Sequence record: phage_1
Length of the DNA: 64,000 bases
Direction: 5' to 3' (one strand)
The position numbers were made by a program, and so were the translations under genes. The notes beneath the pieces are model-generated. The model was not told where the DNA came from. It saw only the letters and a list, made by a program, of their open reading frames with translations, and searched no databases. How positions within the stretch are numbered: position 1 is the stretch's first letter; each line of letters opens with the position of its first letter. This document shows, piece by piece, positions 2,283 to 40,950 of this stretch.

Positions 2283-2525
2283 ATGAACTTGTATTTGCTA
2301 GAACGAACTGACGATATCGGGTATGATGAATTTGATTCCATAATCGTGGCGGCTCCTACGGAGCAAGCTGCGTGTGCAATTCCTCCCGACTGTGGTCATT
2401 GGATGGACTGCCGCTGGTTACCGAAAGAGCGCTGGGATGAAGGGCTTACCCTGACCGTTACTCTTATCGGTACTACGCACTATCCTGCTGGGACCGTCGT
2501 TCATGAATCGTTCAATGCTGGCTAA
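2283..2525 (+). CDS. Small hypothetical phage protein (paralog of 985..1560)
   Basis: GGAG SD. The 5' DNA cggagaat(t)aa(a)tcatgaacttgtat is shared with ORF 985. Confidence 0.8.
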   Translation: MNLYLLERTDDIGYDEFDSIIVAAPTEQAACAIPPDCGHWMDCRWLPKERWDEGLTLTVTLIGTTHYPAGTVVHESFNAG

Positions 2526-2704
2526 ACAGTGGGCTTCGGCCCACTAACCCTATTCGAGCCGTGATACTTACTCAGATTGTGCGGGTTGATGTCCCGCATG
2601 AGCCGGTAGCAGCTCAGACCTACGGTAGACCAATAAATCCGTAGCAGCCAGGTACACAAAGCACCAGGTCGCTTGTACAGGATGCTGGGTATCTGACCGG
2701 TCAT
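2522..2704 (-). CDS. Possible 60-aa hypothetical protein
   Basis: GAGGT SD 5' of the ATG on the minus strand; converges on the 2528-2545 hairpin. Confidence 0.35.
   Translation of the reverse strand: MTGQIPSILYKRPGALCTWLLRIYWSTVGLSCYRLMRDINPHNLSKYHGSNRVSGPKPTV
2528..2545. terminator. Hairpin with TTCG loop
   Basis: AGTGGGC-TTCG-GCCCACT directly after the ORF 2283 stop; no T-run. Confidence 0.5.
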
Positions 2705-2732
2705 AACCTCATTCGATACGAGACACGTTTAT

Positions 2733-3105
2733 GCATGAAATACTCCAGTACATCAGGATGTTGATTTCCAACGTCCGGTTCTGGGTATTCAATCATGTTT
2801 GGTTTACAGGCGATGGGTTTTCCCGCAAGGGCCCCACTTACAGACTGGCGTCTCCACGACAACCGTCCCTAGGGGACAGGCAAGCACCGGCCCATTAAGC
2901 CGCCACGCTACGCCTGTAAATCCACAATCTGATAACCGAATGGGATTGAGTTCCCAGTGTTAGGGTGACTATGTGTCACCGTAGGCGCGGTACCTCATAC
3001 GGCCGGTACGCCACGAATGTACGTGATAGCGGGTGGTGCTTGGAGACGCTAAGACCTGACCTTGCGGCCAGGCTCAGAAGAAGAAGTCCATCACCCGCAT
3101 TCAGA
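2733..3105 (+). ncRNA. Candidate structured ncRNA block 3
   Basis: Starts at the G of a TATG (2730-2733). Stems 2756-2763/2769-2776, 2801-2812/2911-2923 (ends ...ATCCA) and 3029-3038/3089-3098, plus a CCC-GCAA-GGG GNRA hairpin. Confidence 0.55.
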
Positions 3106-3300: not shown

Positions 3301-3369
3301 GGCTTTGTAGCTCAGGTAGGTAGAGCAACCTCTTCGAGGAAGGTCGCCGGTTCGAGTCCGGTCAAAGCA
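3301..3369 (+). ncRNA. tRNA-like element with shortened anticodon arm
   Basis: Acceptor GCTTTG/CAAAGC, TA at 8-9, D arm GCTC-AGGTAGGTA-GAGC, variable AGGTC and T arm GCCGG-TTCGAGT-CCGGT are canonical. The anticodon arm is only 13 nt (ACCTCTTCGAGGA) versus 17. No encoded CCA. Confidence 0.75.
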
Positions 3370-3370
3370 A

Positions 3371-3452
3371 GAGCAGCGAAGTTAGAGGAATTAACACCCG
3401 ACTCATAATCGGATATTTCGACGGTTCGAATCCGTGCCGTTTGCTCGCCCCA
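3371..3452 (+). pseudogene. Degenerate tRNA-Met/Ile2 (CAT)
   Basis: Anticodon arm CCGA-CTCATAA-TCGG (CAT at 3404-3406) and T loop GGTTCGAATCC are present. The acceptor stem is bulged and U8 is missing. Confidence 0.6.
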
Positions 3453-34794: not shown

Positions 34795-37539
34795 ATGGTA
34801 GAAATTCAAATGACTTACACGAGTATGGGGGTACGGGTTGAAGTCCCCATCCGCCAGGCTGAAAGGGCCATACTCGCGTGGGCCGAAGAGAATATGCACG
34901 CCCCAAAGATGGGCAAGCAACATGGACGAATAACCACGGAACGCGGCGATGCGTACTACGCCCACATTCCGTCTTTAAGGACATTCATTTTCCATAAAGT
35001 GTTCGCTGAGAAGATTAAACATATCCTCCAACGGGCAGCAATTGAATACGCTTTTCAGTACAAGCTTACAGAGCACCATCCTGAACGAGGAACACCTTAC
35101 AGCTGTACATTTGATAACTACGGTTTCTCGATGGTAGAAAGCGATCCGGAGTCGCGGTTCTATTATCAGAACGAGGTTGTGGATGCAGCATCCGATCCAA
35201 ACCGACCACAGACAATCTTTGCCATTCAGACAGGGAGAGGAAAATGCTGTGCTCATGGTACGCGTGTGCGTGTACCGGGTGGTTGGAAGAACATTGAGGA
35301 TATACAGCTAGGTGATTACGTTACGGGGCGTGACGGAAAACCAGCAATGGTCTCTGGAGTGTTCCCACAGGGTGTGGTTGACCTGTATCAGGTGACGTTT
35401 TGGGATGGTAGGAGTGTTGACGTATGTGGCGAGCACTTGTGGCAAAGCTACTACGTTAATACCACCGAGAATCGTCGCTGGGGTGTACGTGATACCCTAG
35501 AGATGAAACGTTTAATTTCGATGCCTAATCCACGGGTATACATCCCATTACCAGAACCAGAGGAAATGCCAGCTAAGGATTTTGTCATTCATCCGTATTT
35601 ACTCGGTATCCTCTTGGGTGATGGCTCCCTATCGATGCCTGGTGTTTTATACACCAAAGGCGATGTGGAGATTCGTGACCGTGTTGCTGAGGTCATGCCC
35701 GCTGGACATGCAATCCATGATTCATCGTACAGCGATGGGATAACGAAGTGCATCTCTTGTCCCGGCGGTGTTAACCTTGTCCGCAGAGAGCTTGAGCGGT
35801 TAGGGTTAATTGGCTGCAGGTCTTGGGAAAAGTTCATACCTGGAGATTACTTCGAAACGTCCATCGAACAACGGTGGGAGTTGTTGCGTGGCTTGATGGA
35901 TACTGACGGTACTGTGGATAAGGATGGTGGTACGCCTTCTTTCTGTTCCACCAGTAAAGAATTGGCTTTAGGTGTTCAGGAACTTGTGCGGTCTTTAGGA
36001 GGGATTGCAACACTACGCGAGAAACGTCCGTTCTTCACACACAACGGCGAACGTCGTGAAGGTCGTTTGGCTTATAACGTCTCCATCCGCCACAAAACAC
36101 CATCGAAACTGTTCCACCTTCCAAGGAAGAAAGAACTGTGTCGTGATAACGGACAATACACCGATATACTGAAACTCCGTGTTAAGTCTATCGAACCCAT
36201 TGGTCGTGATCTTGCCACGTGTATTCGTGTCGAGAACGACGATGCGTTGTTTGTGGTGGACAAGTGGATCGTTACGCACAACACCAAGACCTGTATGAAG
36301 TCGATGGTTAAACGGGGAACCCGTACCGCATTGATTCACCGTCCGTCATACGTTCCCAAATGGCTGTTTGACGTCTGTGATGATGAAACAGGACTTCGTA
36401 TACTTCGTGACGAGGTGTTAGTTTGTACAGGCGTACAGGCGATTTACGACGCACTGGAGATGGGTAAGTCGGGAGAGCTAGATAGACGCGGTATTAAGGT
36501 AATAATCCTCCCCACGGTCTCTCTACAGCGTTTCCTGAAGGAGTACATTAACACTGCTGCGACTAACCCTGTGGACCTGGATACGTTTTATGATGTTCTG
36601 GGTGTGGGTCTGGTGGCGATGGATGAGGTGCACGAGCATTTTCACCTCGTTTACATGGCTGGTATAATGTTGAACCCGCCGGCATCGATAGAGATGTCTG
36701 CAACTCTTAAACCGGGTAGCAGTAAAGCCTTTATCGCGGAGCGGTATTTAGAACGTTTCCCAATGGAGTACCGAATCAGTATTCCAATCATTCCGGTGGT
36801 TGACGTGAAAGCGTTGTACTATCGACTGGATGATAAGAAGTTCGCGTGGTGGGCGTCGAAGATGACGCCGTATAACCACAAACTCTTCGAAGGGAAGCTG
36901 ATTAAAGAGAACTTGCATTTAGAATACGCGAACATGATCTGGGATGTGGTTGAGAAATCGTTCCTTAAACGGTATCAACCCGGCCAGAAGTGTTTGCTGC
37001 TATTTGCCACGGTTGCAATGTGTGAGTTCTTTACCGAGTATGTGAAAGATAAGTTATCGCGTGACCCTGTATTCCATCCACTGATGGTGGCGAAATATAA
37101 TGCAGGCGATTCGTATGACGACTTTATCCAAGCAGACTTCTCTATCTCCACACCGGGGAAAGCGGGGACTGCGGTCGATAAACCTGGGTTGGTGCACATG
37201 TACATTTCAACCCCGGTAGAAGACCAGCAACTGAACGAACAGATGGCCGGTCGTCCACGTAAGATTCTCCACAACGAGTGGGGTGAAATAGACCCAACGG
37301 TGTGGTTATTCCATGCGTATAACGTACCGAAGCATTGCAATTACTTGAATGCCCGCCAGAAATCACTCAAGGATGTCGTATTGTCGTTCCGTATCGCGAC
37401 ATCCCCCTACGTTGTAAGGAAATCACATGCTCACTCCGCCGCGTCCAGCAGAGCCACTGCCGCCCTACATCGGAATGACTTTAGCAAGTTTTCTCGAAAA
37501 CATTCTAAAGGCGTATCCCGGCGTAGAAGACGTCGCTAA
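34795..37539 (+). CDS. SF2 (DEAD/DEAH-like) helicase with intein (phiKZ gp75-like)
   Basis: Walker A QTGRGK/T split by the intein; DEVH Walker B, SAT motif III and QMAGR motif VI. Confidence 0.88.
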   Translation: MVEIQMTYTSMGVRVEVPIRQAERAILAWAEENMHAPKMGKQHGRITTERGDAYYAHIPSLRTFIFHKVFAEKIKHILQRAAIEYAFQYKLTEHHPERGTPYSCTFDNYGFSMVESDPESRFYYQNEVVDAASDPNRPQTIFAIQTGRGKCCAHGTRVRVPGGWKNIEDIQLGDYVTGRDGKPAMVSGVFPQGVVDLYQVTFWDGRSVDVCGEHLWQSYYVNTTENRRWGVRDTLEMKRLISMPNPRVYIPLPEPEEMPAKDFVIHPYLLGILLGDGSLSMPGVLYTKGDVEIRDRVAEVMPAGHAIHDSSYSDGITKCISCPGGVNLVRRELERLGLIGCRSWEKFIPGDYFETSIEQRWELLRGLMDTDGTVDKDGGTPSFCSTSKELALGVQELVRSLGGIATLREKRPFFTHNGERREGRLAYNVSIRHKTPSKLFHLPRKKELCRDNGQYTDILKLRVKSIEPIGRDLATCIRVENDDALFVVDKWIVTHNTKTCMKSMVKRGTRTALIHRPSYVPKWLFDVCDDETGLRILRDEVLVCTGVQAIYDALEMGKSGELDRRGIKVIILPTVSLQRFLKEYINTAATNPVDLDTFYDVLGVGLVAMDEVHEHFHLVYMAGIMLNPPASIEMSATLKPGSSKAFIAERYLERFPMEYRISIPIIPVVDVKALYYRLDDKKFAWWASKMTPYNHKLFEGKLIKENLHLEYANMIWDVVEKSFLKRYQPGQKCLLLFATVAMCEFFTEYVKDKLSRDPVFHPLMVAKYNAGDSYDDFIQADFSISTPGKAGTAVDKPGLVHMYISTPVEDQQLNEQMAGRPRKILHNEWGEIDPTVWLFHAYNVPKHCNYLNARQKSLKDVVLSFRIATSPYVVRKSHAHSAASSRATAALHRNDFSKFSRKHSKGVSRRRRRR
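35245..36282 (+). mobile_element. Intein (346 aa) with LAGLIDADG homing endonuclease
   Basis: Starts CCAHGTRV..IEDIQLGD, block B CGEH, motifs YLLGILLGDG and LLRGLMDTDG, ends IVTHN followed by Thr(+1). Confidence 0.93.
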
Positions 37540-37810
37540 GAAACTCTGCACCGACGCCACTATCAACCAGGCGTTTCATTACTACATGGTCACTGAACAT
37601 TACAGCGGCCTGTTCCTTAACCAACGCGGGTTGACGTATTACGTCACCCGCACGTCAAGTATCCGTAACACTTCGTCGTACGAGTTATATACGTACGTGT
37701 TGTGGAATGAGAACCCGGCCGGTAGTGTCGATCAGAATCCAAAGATGGCTTATCGTCTTTACTCTGAAAAATGGCACGATTGGGTGACTGTTCCACACGA
37801 TGCAAGTTAA
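37427..37810 (+). CDS. Hypothetical protein overlapping the helicase 3' end
   Basis: AAGGA SD; 113-nt overlap. Confidence 0.7.
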   Translation: MLTPPRPAEPLPPYIGMTLASFLENILKAYPGVEDVAKKLCTDATINQAFHYYMVTEHYSGLFLNQRGLTYYVTRTSSIRNTSSYELYTYVLWNENPAGSVDQNPKMAYRLYSEKWHDWVTVPHDAS

Positions 37811-37870: not shown

Positions 37871-38491
37871 ATGAGTCGTCGCAAAAAGAAACCCGCTTAT
37901 AACCCACGTAAAGACGCACGCGATTTCGTCAAGGCGATGATGCAGTCTGTGTTGAAAAAACAAGCTGTGTTTATCGAAAGTACCGAATTCCTGTCAGGCA
38001 AAATTGATCGGGAGCGTGAAGTAACTGAAGCCATTGCGCACGAAGAGCTGAAAGCTTTCACGTTGAAAGCGCTGGATGAAGCACAAGCGGCATTCCTCGG
38101 CATGTGCCAACAAGGCAAAGAGCTGTTCGGTAAACTGATTGTTGAGGCAGATGCTAAGGCTGTGCCGGTGTTTGACATGCTGAACGATAACAGCAAAACC
38201 TGGAAAGAGGTTAAAGACCAGTTCCACGTCGACCACACCGAGCTGTCTTTGATTGACCAGCGGGCGAATATGCTCGCGATGGATATCCAGGGCACCAGTA
38301 TCGAAATCTTCTCTACGTATAACGCGAAAGTGAAGTTCGTGAAGCAGGCGCTGAATAACGGGCATACCGTGGAACAAGCCGAAGTTCTGTTGGCCGAAGC
38401 TCTGGCTAATAATTCGAAAGAACTCCCTAAAAACGCCATCGTCGATCACAACGACGTTGTAGTAGAAACCGAGGAAGCGGCACATGTCTGA
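37871..38491 (+). CDS. Hypothetical protein
   Basis: AAGGA SD; basic N-terminus MSRRKKK. Confidence 0.8.
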   Translation: MSRRKKKPAYNPRKDARDFVKAMMQSVLKKQAVFIESTEFLSGKIDREREVTEAIAHEELKAFTLKALDEAQAAFLGMCQQGKELFGKLIVEADAKAVPVFDMLNDNSKTWKEVKDQFHVDHTELSLIDQRANMLAMDIQGTSIEIFSTYNAKVKFVKQALNNGHTVEQAEVLLAEALANNSKELPKNAIVDHNDVVVETEEAAHV

Positions 38492-40454
38492 GATCCAAGA
38501 TCAGCGTCCGGGTAATGCCCGTCNCCCTAATCCCGATCAGCCAGCCCCTGTGGCGGCTGCTACCCAACAAGAGATGATTCTTCCGACCGTGCCTGATGAC
38601 GCGAATCCGGATGCAATCATCATGNCTATTAAACANNNNNACCCCNATTTTNNTTTTGCCCGTGCAGAAGAAGTTTATCACCAACATTATCATCAGCCGG
38701 AGCCTAAGCTCGAGCGTCCGACGTTTGTAGAAGAAGCTTTGCCCGAACCTGCTGCACCGGTACAGCCTGTATCCCAGACCTTCTCTGAACAGGTGCATGA
38801 GCATATTCATCACACCCCAGAACCGGNGGNAGAGAAANCGCCNGNGGNANAACCNNCNCCCCNNCNAAAAACNCCGGNNGGGGGNGNCCCNNNNAACCCG
38901 GGGNNAAAAAAAAAGNAAAACNCNNCNCCNAAGGTTCCGGAANAANAACAGGNCCNNGNGANTNACTTNGGTAANACCCATTTAGCTGAAACCGCCGAAA
39001 TGGGTGAAGATGAAGCTGATCGTATCCTGACACAGTCGAAGATGTTGATTGGTCTGAAACAAGACCCTAACATCATTGCAGACTCTCTGCAAAAGTTCCT
39101 CGGTAACATTAAACGTTCACCGAAAGACGGTCGGCTGCTGTTCGAAAGCCCTGAACAACAACAGGTTTACGACGACATCTATCGTGCTTTGAACATGACA
39201 CCGCCACGTCTACAGGACGGCGTACCGGCATTCGCTGGTGCACTGGACCGTGGTGACACCGCTTGGGAACAGCGTGTGATGTTGCCGGACGGTAAGGCAT
39301 CTGGTGCTATTGCACCGCGTGACAATATGCACACTGGCGCGCTGGCTGCTTTGCGTCGTGTACGTAAGTCGGGTATTCCGAACATGGTTTGGCTGCCGGC
39401 CACAGGTATCTACGTGNGCTTCCNCGCACCACATGAACGCGACCTTTGTGACTTCGACATGCGTCTAACACTGGAAACTGCGACCATCGGTATGCAGACC
39501 TACGGATTGATGCTGTCGTCGTCTTCTGGCGTGTACATGCGTCACATGGTTGAATTCGCACTTCAGTTTGTTACCGAAGCAACCATCGATTGTGCAGGTA
39601 ACGATCTGCGTACGGTGCTGTTGGATACCATTGATCTGGCTGACTACTGGCTGGTTATTCTGGGTCCGTTGCAGGCGAAGTGGCCGTCTGGTATTCCATG
39701 GACGCTGATGTGTGGCGAAGACGGTTGCACTCAGCAGGAAGATGTGAAGCTGAATATCGCACGTTGTATCCGTTTTGGTTCCGGTCTGTTTAGCGACCTG
39801 CAGAAANAACNGTGGGNACGTCAGCGCGGTACTGAGCGTCCAGTGATTTCTATTGCTGAACAGCGCGAATATATCGCGGCGCATCAGGTTGACCCATCCT
39901 CGGTATTTGAATACCACGACGTGCGTGTTGAATTTGGCCGTTCTACCCTGGGTAGCTTCTTTGACTCCACCGAGAAGTGGATTGAAGACGTTAACGCGTC
40001 AACTACGGCAGCGCTGTCTGAATTTGCTACCGAGCGTGAACGTGAATCCCATATGCGTTTAACTGCGGAAGCCCGTCGCTTAACGCGCTACGCTCACATG
40101 GTGAAATCTATCACTGTTAATGAGCAACGTGAAGTAAACGGTGAAATGCAGGTTATCCCACAAACTGAAACCGACACAGCGAAAATCGTTGAGATGCTGG
40201 AAGAGCTGTCTTCCGACCGTATCTACGTTGGTCAGTTTGAAAACGCGATTGCTGAATACAACGAACGTACACGTTTAGCGGTATTCGGTTACATGGGTAA
40301 ACGCTGCCCGGCGTGCGGTAAAACACACGGCGAGAAAGACGGTCTGTATCGCGGTATTGTTACCATCTCACCGGACAGGGTTTTTTTCGTGCTCTCTCGA
40401 GTGGTGTCCGAGATTCAGAAATTCTTGCTGGATCAATACGCCGATATTGGCTAG
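38484..40454 (+). CDS. Conserved protein with CxxC-type Zn motifs; putative tail/baseplate assembly chaperone
   Basis: GAGG SD; CGEDGC and CPAC; slippery T TTT TTC near the 3' end. The N-terminal part is N-rich. Confidence 0.65.
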   Translation: MSEIQDQRPGNARXPNPDQPAPVAAATQQEMILPTVPDDANPDAIIMXIKXXXPXFXFARAEEVYHQHYHQPEPKLERPTFVEEALPEPAAPVQPVSQTFSEQVHEHIHHTPEPXXEKXXXXXXXPXXKXPXGXXXXNPGXKKKXNXXXKVPEXXQXXXXXXGXTHLAETAEMGEDEADRILTQSKMLIGLKQDPNIIADSLQKFLGNIKRSPKDGRLLFESPEQQQVYDDIYRALNMTPPRLQDGVPAFAGALDRGDTAWEQRVMLPDGKASGAIAPRDNMHTGALAALRRVRKSGIPNMVWLPATGIYVXFXAPHERDLCDFDMRLTLETATIGMQTYGLMLSSSSGVYMRHMVEFALQFVTEATIDCAGNDLRTVLLDTIDLADYWLVILGPLQAKWPSGIPWTLMCGEDGCTQQEDVKLNIARCIRFGSGLFSDLQKXXWXRQRGTERPVISIAEQREYIAAHQVDPSSVFEYHDVRVEFGRSTLGSFFDSTEKWIEDVNASTTAALSEFATERERESHMRLTAEARRLTRYAHMVKSITVNEQREVNGEMQVIPQTETDTAKIVEMLEELSSDRIYVGQFENAIAEYNERTRLAVFGYMGKRCPACGKTHGEKDGLYRGIVTISPDRVFFVLSRVVSEIQKFLLDQYADIG

Positions 40455-40870
40455 ACCAGGAAGACGTTCCGTCCGAGCAAATCATTACAACGCTCAAGAT
40501 GGATACCACCTCTCTCTTCAAGCAGCGTAGCACACGTCCTATTACGTATCAGGAAGCCCATAACGAGCTTCTGGAAGCGTATGACCGTACACTGGCTCTT
40601 AATACCGGCGACCATCAGGTAGGGTTGTCAGATTTTGAAAACCCGGTATACGGTAGTCTTTACGATATCTGGTACGCCACTTACTTACGTGAAGAGGTCG
40701 GTGAAAACTACCGGATGTCGATAGACGAGTTCCTCGACCGTCCCCNCTGGCAGATACTNCTNATGCNCGACAATGCCCGTCGCCCCAATGNGTTTTTCCC
40801 CAAANCCGGGGAATACGCGGCGGGTAAACGCGGGCAAAAGGAGCCGGATAAATATATGACGGGATATTAA
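40388..40870 (+). CDS. -1 frame extension ORF (annotated start 40499); putative frameshift product
   Basis: Open from 40322 in the -1 frame of ORF 38484; ATG 40499 has no SD. Confidence 0.6.
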   Translation, partial: RALSSGVRDSEILAGSIRRYWLDQEDVPSEQIITTLKMDTTSLFKQRSTRPITYQEAHNELLEAYDRTLALNTGDHQVGLSDFENPVYGSLYDIWYATYLREEVGENYRMSIDEFLDRPXWQIXXMXDNARRPNXFFPKXGEYAAGKRGQKEPDKYMTGY

Positions 40871-40950
40871 AANAAATTNGGGGNTTCGGCCCCGTTTTCT
40901 TTTTTTTATTCGCCTTGGTATGAATGCCCTTTTCACTATGGAACAGAGCC

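Follow-up and report, generated by a model that had tools for sequence, protein, structure and literature searches.

Two adjacent genes annotated as hypothetical in a jumbo phage probably form a single gene that is read in two frames, in which a programmed -1 ribosomal frameshift would yield both a 656-amino-acid (aa) protein and a longer form of about 795 aa (Table 1). The gene lies in a 64,000-nucleotide (nt) stretch of DNA, sequence record phage_1, which is called the window below. A first-pass annotation of the window had proposed a programmed -1 shift joining the open reading frame (ORF) that begins at 38484 to the one that begins at 40499, and this core claim is strongly supported by the comparative evidence that we present here. 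Judged by comparison of sequences, the same candidate arrangement is found in every sampled lineage of nucleus-forming jumbo phages. Tail chaperone genes and a small number of capsid genes are the textbook cases of programmed -1 frameshifting in phages, and here the same recoding device would operate in a large non-structural gene of every lineage of these phages that we sampled.

Overlapping reading frames at a slippery heptamer

Direct reading of the window confirmed the in-phase slippery heptamer that the first-pass annotation had placed at 40382-40388. Frame 0 reads R-V-F-F across a run of seven T's followed by C (T7 then C), which contains a canonical X XXY YYZ heptamer in phase, and it is the only in-phase heptamer within the stretch where both frames are open. 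Both tRNAs engaged at the heptamer are Phe-tRNA, for which re-pairing one base back is perfect. After the heptamer, frame 0 continues for 21 sense codons, all of them dual-coding, and then stops, which agrees with the earlier count of 22 codons to the stop when the stop codon itself is included. The -1 frame was likewise found to be open from 40322 through the whole of the annotated downstream ORF, ending at a stop codon at 40868-40870 with 160 codons 3' of the heptamer, and the arithmetic behind the two predicted sizes, 656 aa and a 795-aa fusion, is right. Between 40322 and 40499 the -1 frame contains no ATG, GTG or TTG, and no purine-rich Shine-Dalgarno sequence of the kind carried by the neighbouring genes precedes the ATG at 40499, as had also been pointed out. 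From these sequence features and from the comparisons below, this ATG is probably no real independent start.

The T7 run by itself is within chance expectation, with 31 overlapping matches in the window, where shuffles gave 16.5 +/- 5.2. The run alone is therefore unremarkable in the window and the case rests on comparison with relatives; what goes beyond chance, on the comparative evidence, is the conservation of the run, its phase, the frame relation and -1-frame coding across those relatives.

Conservation within the SPN3US-like clade

The 2.4-kb stretch that holds the gene has full-length matches to SPN3US-like jumbo phages (genus Seoulvirus), and window coordinates are those of Escherichia phage vB_EcoM_Lh1B (OK428535.1), which bears out the original assignment to a jumbo phage. 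We compared the window with 11 annotated loci of this clade, drawn from Seoulvirus, Erskinevirus, Wellingtonvirus, Machinavirus and Derbicusvirus, and with a further 17 IMG/VR loci, eight of them metagenomic, for 28 loci in all. Conservation of the heptamer and of the frame in relatives had been suggested as a check on the proposal, and every one of the 28 loci displayed the identical heptamer, in the same phase and at the same 21-codon distance from the frame-0 stop, in a run that is exactly T7 then C and never longer. The -1 frame remains open for 151-162 codons past the heptamer in these loci, among which protein identity of the upstream ORF (gene 1) falls to about 42%, and the 40 nt immediately 3' of the heptamer are nearly invariant across the clade.

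The -1-frame protein can be aligned from the first codon after the heptamer (tblastn; MAFFT), and the alignment continues through the stretch that would be intergenic under a two-gene model. At the position of the window ATG at 40499, the eight loci of the other genera have a Leu codon and the two other Seoulvirus loci have ATG; the annotated downstream starts are scattered over 26-77 codons 3' of the heptamer, and the first possible downstream start codon ranges from -28 to +61 codons relative to it. The first codon after the heptamer encodes V, E or A in frame 0 and always Arg in frame -1. Pairwise ratios of nonsynonymous to synonymous differences (pN/pS), pooled over the clade loci, were 0.53 for frame 0, 0.61 for frame -1 and 1.16 for frame +1 in the 21-codon overlap, and 1.31, 0.48 and 1.57, respectively, in the next 15 codons. 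This pattern is the signature expected of a dual-coding overlap followed by coding in frame -1 alone, and purifying selection, as the comparison of these loci shows, acts on both of the predicted coding frames.

Conservation across nucleus-forming jumbo phages

Fourteen distant lineages were sampled by hand (phiKZ, PhiPA3, Phabio, AH06, Simmy50, RSL2, MJ359, SA002, Xoo-sp14, Haymo, Proteus phage 10, PDCC-1, Viktualia and pVa-21), and five representatives from the SPN3US-like clade bring the lineages counted here to 19. The homologues of gene 1 include phiKZ gp077, PhiPA3 gp074 and related proteins, with protein identity down to about 20% (phiKZ gp077). In each of the 14 distant lineages the next ORF is a small one on the same strand and in the -1 frame, and that frame is open back over the end of gene 1 and over a conserved Phe-Phe motif. 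The frame relation is thus -1 with a stop-free overlap in 19/19 lineages, the -1 frame being open for 20-117 codons upstream of the annotated start. The -1 products of SPN3US-like and phiKZ-like phages are themselves homologous (hhalign probability 98.4%, expectation value (E) 5e-15), and the phiKZ-like products also align upstream of their annotated starts. An in-phase T-rich heptamer is present at the Phe-Phe motif in 11 of the 14 distant lineages.

We note two individual loci in this sample. The annotation of Simmy50 (2517-3065 of the fetched locus) extends the small gene 136 nt into gene 1, so its annotators noticed the long open -1 frame without interpreting it. Phage pVa-21 (3348-3411 of the fetched locus) keeps the -1 relation and the open overlap and has another in-phase heptamer nine codons before the stop; to judge from its sequence, the shift site may have moved. 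For phiKZ, the two-frame arrangement appears never to have been annotated before, and our search of the literature, which did not cover every journal, found no report of a frameshift in SPN3US, phiKZ or Chimalliviridae.

Codon choice at the site

Codons at the site were tabulated for 24 loci. All 24 have TTT as the first of the two Phe codons, against a Phe usage in gene 1 of 34% TTT and 66% TTC. Gene 1 of Xoo-sp14 has no TTT other than this one, and that of RSL2 has just two, both in the Phe-Phe pair. The codon before the pair specifies a variable amino acid (V, L, T, G, A or S) and nevertheless ends in T in 22/24 loci, and a pure homopolymer of T6-T8 is present at the site in 23 of the 24. 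As read from this tabulation, codon choice keeps the T run intact, contrary to the usual preference of the gene.

Fused forms among homologues

A collection of 5.8 billion proteins yielded 43 homologues of gene 1, of 389-706 aa (532-706 aa for the intact ones), and none of the 43 is an in-frame fusion. Among 1.84 billion representative proteins there were 25 matches to the -1 product, 23 of which are short stand-alone ORFs. Two longer matches were set aside: one of 312 aa, from a 1.6-kb Logan contig in which the frame changes elsewhere, was rejected as poor sequence, and the other is a repeat protein matched by chance.

The only record with one 795-aa ORF is SEGD1 (KU726251.1, 2001-4388 of the fetched locus). 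Its homopolymer has the same length as that of SPN3US, and its single ORF results from two small insertion-deletion (indel) events, amounting to a net change of one base, within 66 nt upstream, in a zone where the -1 frame is already open. With the run length unchanged and the indels upstream, SEGD1 therefore neither backs the hypothesis of an error in the run nor constitutes a clean fusion, and its single ORF is either a real variant or a sequence error. The first-pass annotation had held that a true run of another length, within one fused ORF, would overturn its proposal; no relative examined, SEGD1 included, shows this, and in more than 40 genomes and metagenomic assemblies of the clade, each sequenced independently, the run has the identical length.

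Proposed mechanism and alternative explanations

We favor a programmed shift because the heptamer, its phase, the open -1 frame and the conservation of the -1 protein hold in the sampled lineages. In the putative mechanism, ribosomes translating the upstream ORF would reach the in-phase T run and the C that follows it, where both Phe-tRNAs could re-pair one base back. Without a slip, translation would run through 21 more frame-0 codons and release a 656-aa protein ending in a short helix, whereas ribosomes that slip would continue for 160 codons in the -1 frame to give a protein of about 795 aa. In this long form the terminal helix would be replaced by a helical domain that is at present mis-annotated as a separate gene of 123 aa. 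The heptamer U_UU.U_UU.C belongs to the class H_HH.U_UU.Y, which is ranked among the efficient motifs in E. coli, and some insertion sequence (IS) elements use it (Sharma et al. 2014, PMC4066793). We infer that the shift is made by the ribosome and not by RNA polymerase, and that the phage requires the two products in a fixed proportion; the retention of a frameshift in place of an in-frame fusion, together with conservation of the frame-0 tail, argues that both products matter.

Several points weigh against this interpretation. Support for the trans-frame protein comes entirely from comparison, and the lineages compared share one ancestor, which means that the probabilities quoted for them, such as a summed log10 chance probability of -27 for the stop-free overlap in 19 lineages if these are taken as independent, overstate independence. 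Furthermore, PhiPA3 and Phabio have only T6, which is still a tetramer-type motif, and pVa-21 is without a T run at the conserved spot; therefore, the signal is not uniform across the family. A stimulator of ribosomal shifting was also sought. RNAalifold applied to 11 clade members returned only a 6-bp helix enclosing the site, with no covariation; folding of the single sequence at the site revealed no unusual stability (z = -0.23); for the 60 nt downstream, folded in each of 21 lineages, z was about 0 and no structure was shared; the Rfam search produced chance-level matches only and no frameshift element; and no well-placed internal Shine-Dalgarno sequence was seen. With no stimulator found, the shift would rest on the heptamer alone or on a stimulator that escaped these searches. 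Finally, a junction peptide cannot separate a ribosomal shift from the insertion of one base into the transcript.

Such an insertion is what programmed transcriptional slippage would produce: the phage or host RNA polymerase would stutter on the T run and add one base to some transcripts, from which the same long protein would be made. This explanation is the main rival, and we regard it as doubtful. Nucleus-forming jumbo phages transcribe with their own divergent multisubunit polymerases, whose requirements for slippage may differ, and the two-frame gene adjoins polymerase subunit genes. The purity of the homopolymer at 23 of the 24 tabulated sites and the failure to find an RNA stimulator of ribosomal shifting are both in keeping with slippage, as is the avoidance of seven-U runs in genes, which is due in part to slippage (Sharma et al. 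2014, PMC4066793). However, the clade holds exactly T7 then C in 28/28 loci, although a longer run would favor slippage, and the heptamer always lies in the phase that ribosomal shifting requires; the latter argument is weak because the conserved Phe-Phe motif also fixes the phase. Efficient slippage by bacterial polymerase reportedly needs roughly nine or more bases (Baranov et al. 2005, as cited by Sharma et al. 2014), and by this measure runs of six or seven bases are short for the bacterial enzyme; the homopolymer is T7 in the clade and T6-T8 in the phiKZ-like lineages, and none reaches the length of at least nine.

A second alternative holds that there are two separate genes, the downstream ORF being translated from the ATG at 40499 or by re-initiation, with the layout being coincidental or reflecting translational coupling. 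The locus is annotated in this way in all public records except SEGD1, the two products fall into separate PHROGs families and gene callers find short stand-alone ORFs. The ATG is, however, unconserved and without a Shine-Dalgarno sequence, and both protein conservation and low pN/pS extend past every candidate start as far back as the heptamer. Together with the -1 relation and stop-free overlap in 19/19 lineages, and with a codon choice that keeps the T run against the gene's preference, these observations make two independent genes very improbable. That a homopolymer sequencing error has split one ORF, or that the locus is a frameshifted pseudogene, is scarcely credible: the N's scattered through the N-terminal region of the locus and close to its 3' end and the deposition of SEGD1 as a single 795-aa ORF could be cited in favor, but the run length shared by more than 40 independent clade genomes and assemblies, its retention in SEGD1, where two other indels account for the single ORF, a frame-0 tail that is constant in length and under purifying selection, and the persistence of the arrangement at ~20% protein identity, which is incompatible with decay, all argue against it.

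If the programmed ribosomal frameshift is confirmed, two 'hypothetical genes' would become one two-product gene in more than 200 deposited genomes with a gene-1 homologue, among them those of the models phiKZ, PhiPA3 and SPN3US. Both the short and the long form would then have persisted over a very long period, and this would point to a function that depends on their ratio. The site would also be a clean natural case of apparently stimulator-free frameshifting at a U-run heptamer, with hosts that range from Pseudomonas to Vibrio, and the gene would offer a handle on a protein with a fold predicted to be new. More tentatively, the phage multisubunit polymerases might stutter on six to eight T's, or a stimulator-free ribosomal shift might be tuned by ribosome-binding phage proteins, a proposal that we think unlikely; were it true, the arrangement would be a regulated switch specific to nucleus-forming jumbo phages and not a passive fixed-ratio device.

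Comparison with known frameshifting systems

The first-pass annotation had likened the layout to the tail assembly chaperones typified by lambda G/GT. Resemblances do exist: as in G/GT, a -1 slip near the 3' end of the upstream ORF would give a C-terminally extended second product, the arrangement and not the sequence is kept across very distant phages, and many chaperone sites are also without an obvious RNA stimulator. This reading nevertheless fails on genome context, size, homology and time of expression, and the analogy was not supported. The gene lies among replication and transcription genes and not between tail tube and tape-measure genes, its upstream ORF measures 476-720 aa as opposed to about 100-200 aa, and the phiKZ-type homologue, which is non-structural, was detected at 15 min post-infection. 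Neither sequence nor fold searches linked the gene to a chaperone family, the best match to a chaperone in BFVD having an E of 1.1.

In capsid gene 10A/10B of phage T7, ribosomes shift to the -1 frame at a U-rich site of Phe codons, a few codons ahead of the stop that ends a long ORF, and a minor longer product results. The window gene shares with it a predicted -1 shift shortly before the stop that gives a longer version of the same protein. The T7 extension, however, comprises about 50 residues of a structural protein and has no separately annotated gene, whereas here a 160-residue domain would be added and essentially all records examined carry two annotated genes. The OrfA/OrfAB transposases of IS3 elements similarly consist of two overlapping ORFs joined by a -1 shift, and IS elements use the same type of heptamer (Sharma et al. 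2014, PMC4066793). IS3 sites, however, usually have a pseudoknot or hairpin 3' of the slip and often a Shine-Dalgarno sequence 5' of it, neither of which was seen at the window site, and we found no transposase homology. E. coli dnaX, which encodes tau and gamma, provides a programmed -1 shift with a fixed ratio between forms of a replication-associated protein that differ at the C-terminus; its shifted product is the shorter one, whereas here it would be the longer, and strong stimulators flank the dnaX site, whereas none is evident at this one.

A likeness to T4 gp26/gp51 had been suggested as well. In its favor, one weak BFVD fold match of the gene-1 model is labelled a T4-like baseplate hub assembly protein (E 8.7e-3, template modeling (TM) score 0.26 for the query and 0.47 for the target). 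The T4 gp26-type family model in Pfam, however, gave no match even at E 5, and the gene has no baseplate gene context and belongs to a PHROGs family of unknown function. Since no Pfam match backs the single weak fold match, the likeness stays an unconfirmed lead, and the label 'baseplate protein/hub' that a few depositors attach to homologues is equally unconfirmed.

The predicted protein and its possible function

The AlphaFold model of the gene-1 protein has a mean predicted local distance difference test score (pLDDT) of 72.6. Its first ~170 aa are of low complexity and predicted to be disordered, residues ~170-610 form a confidently predicted alpha/beta core and the tail after the Phe-Phe pair is predicted to be helical; the model of the -1 product is mostly helical, with a pLDDT of 69. 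Five cysteines of gene 1 are invariant in 39 homologues, and four of these form two pairs (Table 1); the first-pass annotation had spoken of Zn motifs. The C410/C415 pair is, on the pattern of conservation, probably half of a four-cysteine zinc site.

Database searches associated neither product with a characterized family. Gene 1 has no match in Pfam, and PHROGs returned only families of unknown function. Foldseek searches of PDB with the gene-1 and -1-product models found nothing, and sequence searches of PDB gave nothing significant, a match to a primase having an E of 0.12. The best single-sequence PDB match, 5dmp_A (E 0.003), was lost when a profile was used and was rejected. In BFVD, apart from the baseplate-labelled match described above, the gene-1 model matches its jumbo-phage homologues. 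In a proteomic study, the Churi homologue of phiKZ gp077 is listed among the non-structural proteins 15 min after infection; that list contains the gene-1 homologue only, and the Goslar virion-structure paper makes no mention of a phiKZ gp077 homologue. The gene-1 product is best described as a non-structural protein that is conserved among nucleus-forming jumbo phages and whose predicted fold has no solved relative.

Genome setting and sequence quality

Matching Seoulvirus records divide the region into hypothetical genes of 656 and 123 aa, whose counterparts are gp39 and gp40 of SPN3US, by gene order, and gp077 and gp076.4 of phiKZ. The features of the locus are collected in Table 1. Upstream of the two-frame gene lie a DNA helicase gene and small ORFs, and downstream a hypothetical gene and the genes for an RNA polymerase beta subunit and a DNA polymerase. 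The neighboring genes that we checked include no tape-measure gene, and its absence, which the first-pass annotation had found unusual, was thereby corroborated. No terminator-like site was found between the two ORFs by the terminator scan. The terminator-like hairpin 3' of the -1 ORF was overlooked by the scan because of N's in its stem, and was recognized by direct reading.

Table 1. Features of the two-frame gene and its surroundings in the window
Feature	Coordinates	Strand	Basis or remark
Whole two-frame gene (candidate)	38484..40870	+	two hypothetical genes in records
Frame-0 ORF, short product of 656 aa	38484..40454	+	translation
Invariant Cys pair C410, C415 (C-x4-C)	39711..39728	+	invariant columns in 39 homologues
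Invariant CxxC pair C608, C611	40305..40316	+	invariant in 39 homologues; just upstream of the recoding region
Putative recoding region, frames 0 and -1 both open	40322..40454	+	direct reading, comparison
-1-frame ORF, of which only 40499..40870 is annotated	40322..40870	+	translation, comparison
Annotated ATG of the downstream ORF	40499..40501	+	no Shine-Dalgarno sequence; poorly conserved
G+C-rich hairpin followed by a T run, terminator-like	40882..40912	+	read directly; immediately 3' of the -1 ORF

In phiKZ and the other distant loci, the two-frame gene keeps as neighbors a small upstream gene of phiKZ gp078 type, the phiKZ gp079-type gene and a gene for a virion RNA polymerase subunit, even where the orientation of these neighbors differs between SPN3US-like and phiKZ-like genomes.

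Scattered single N's are dense in two parts of the window, at 38520-38970, in the low-complexity N-terminus of gene 1, and at 40746-40890, over the last third of the -1 ORF and the terminator, and they make the identity to close relatives look lower. At 38906-38914, within the Lys/Pro-rich part of gene 1 that is predicted to be disordered, the + strand carries nine consecutive A's with N's on both sides, a run long enough to be slippage-prone itself. The records of Salmonella phages SPFM5-SPFM15 match the locus as 13-36 short pieces with fragmentary protein calls, which suggests that these deposits hold many ambiguous or erroneous bases.

Upstream of the two-frame gene, a 127-aa ORF at 37427-37810 overlaps the 3' end of the helicase gene (34795-37539) by 113 nt in another frame. 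It is present in the annotation of SPN3US and Lh1B, whereas SEGD1 and phiEaH2 have a 38-aa gene annotated instead, and the overlap could be another genuine one or an annotation artefact.

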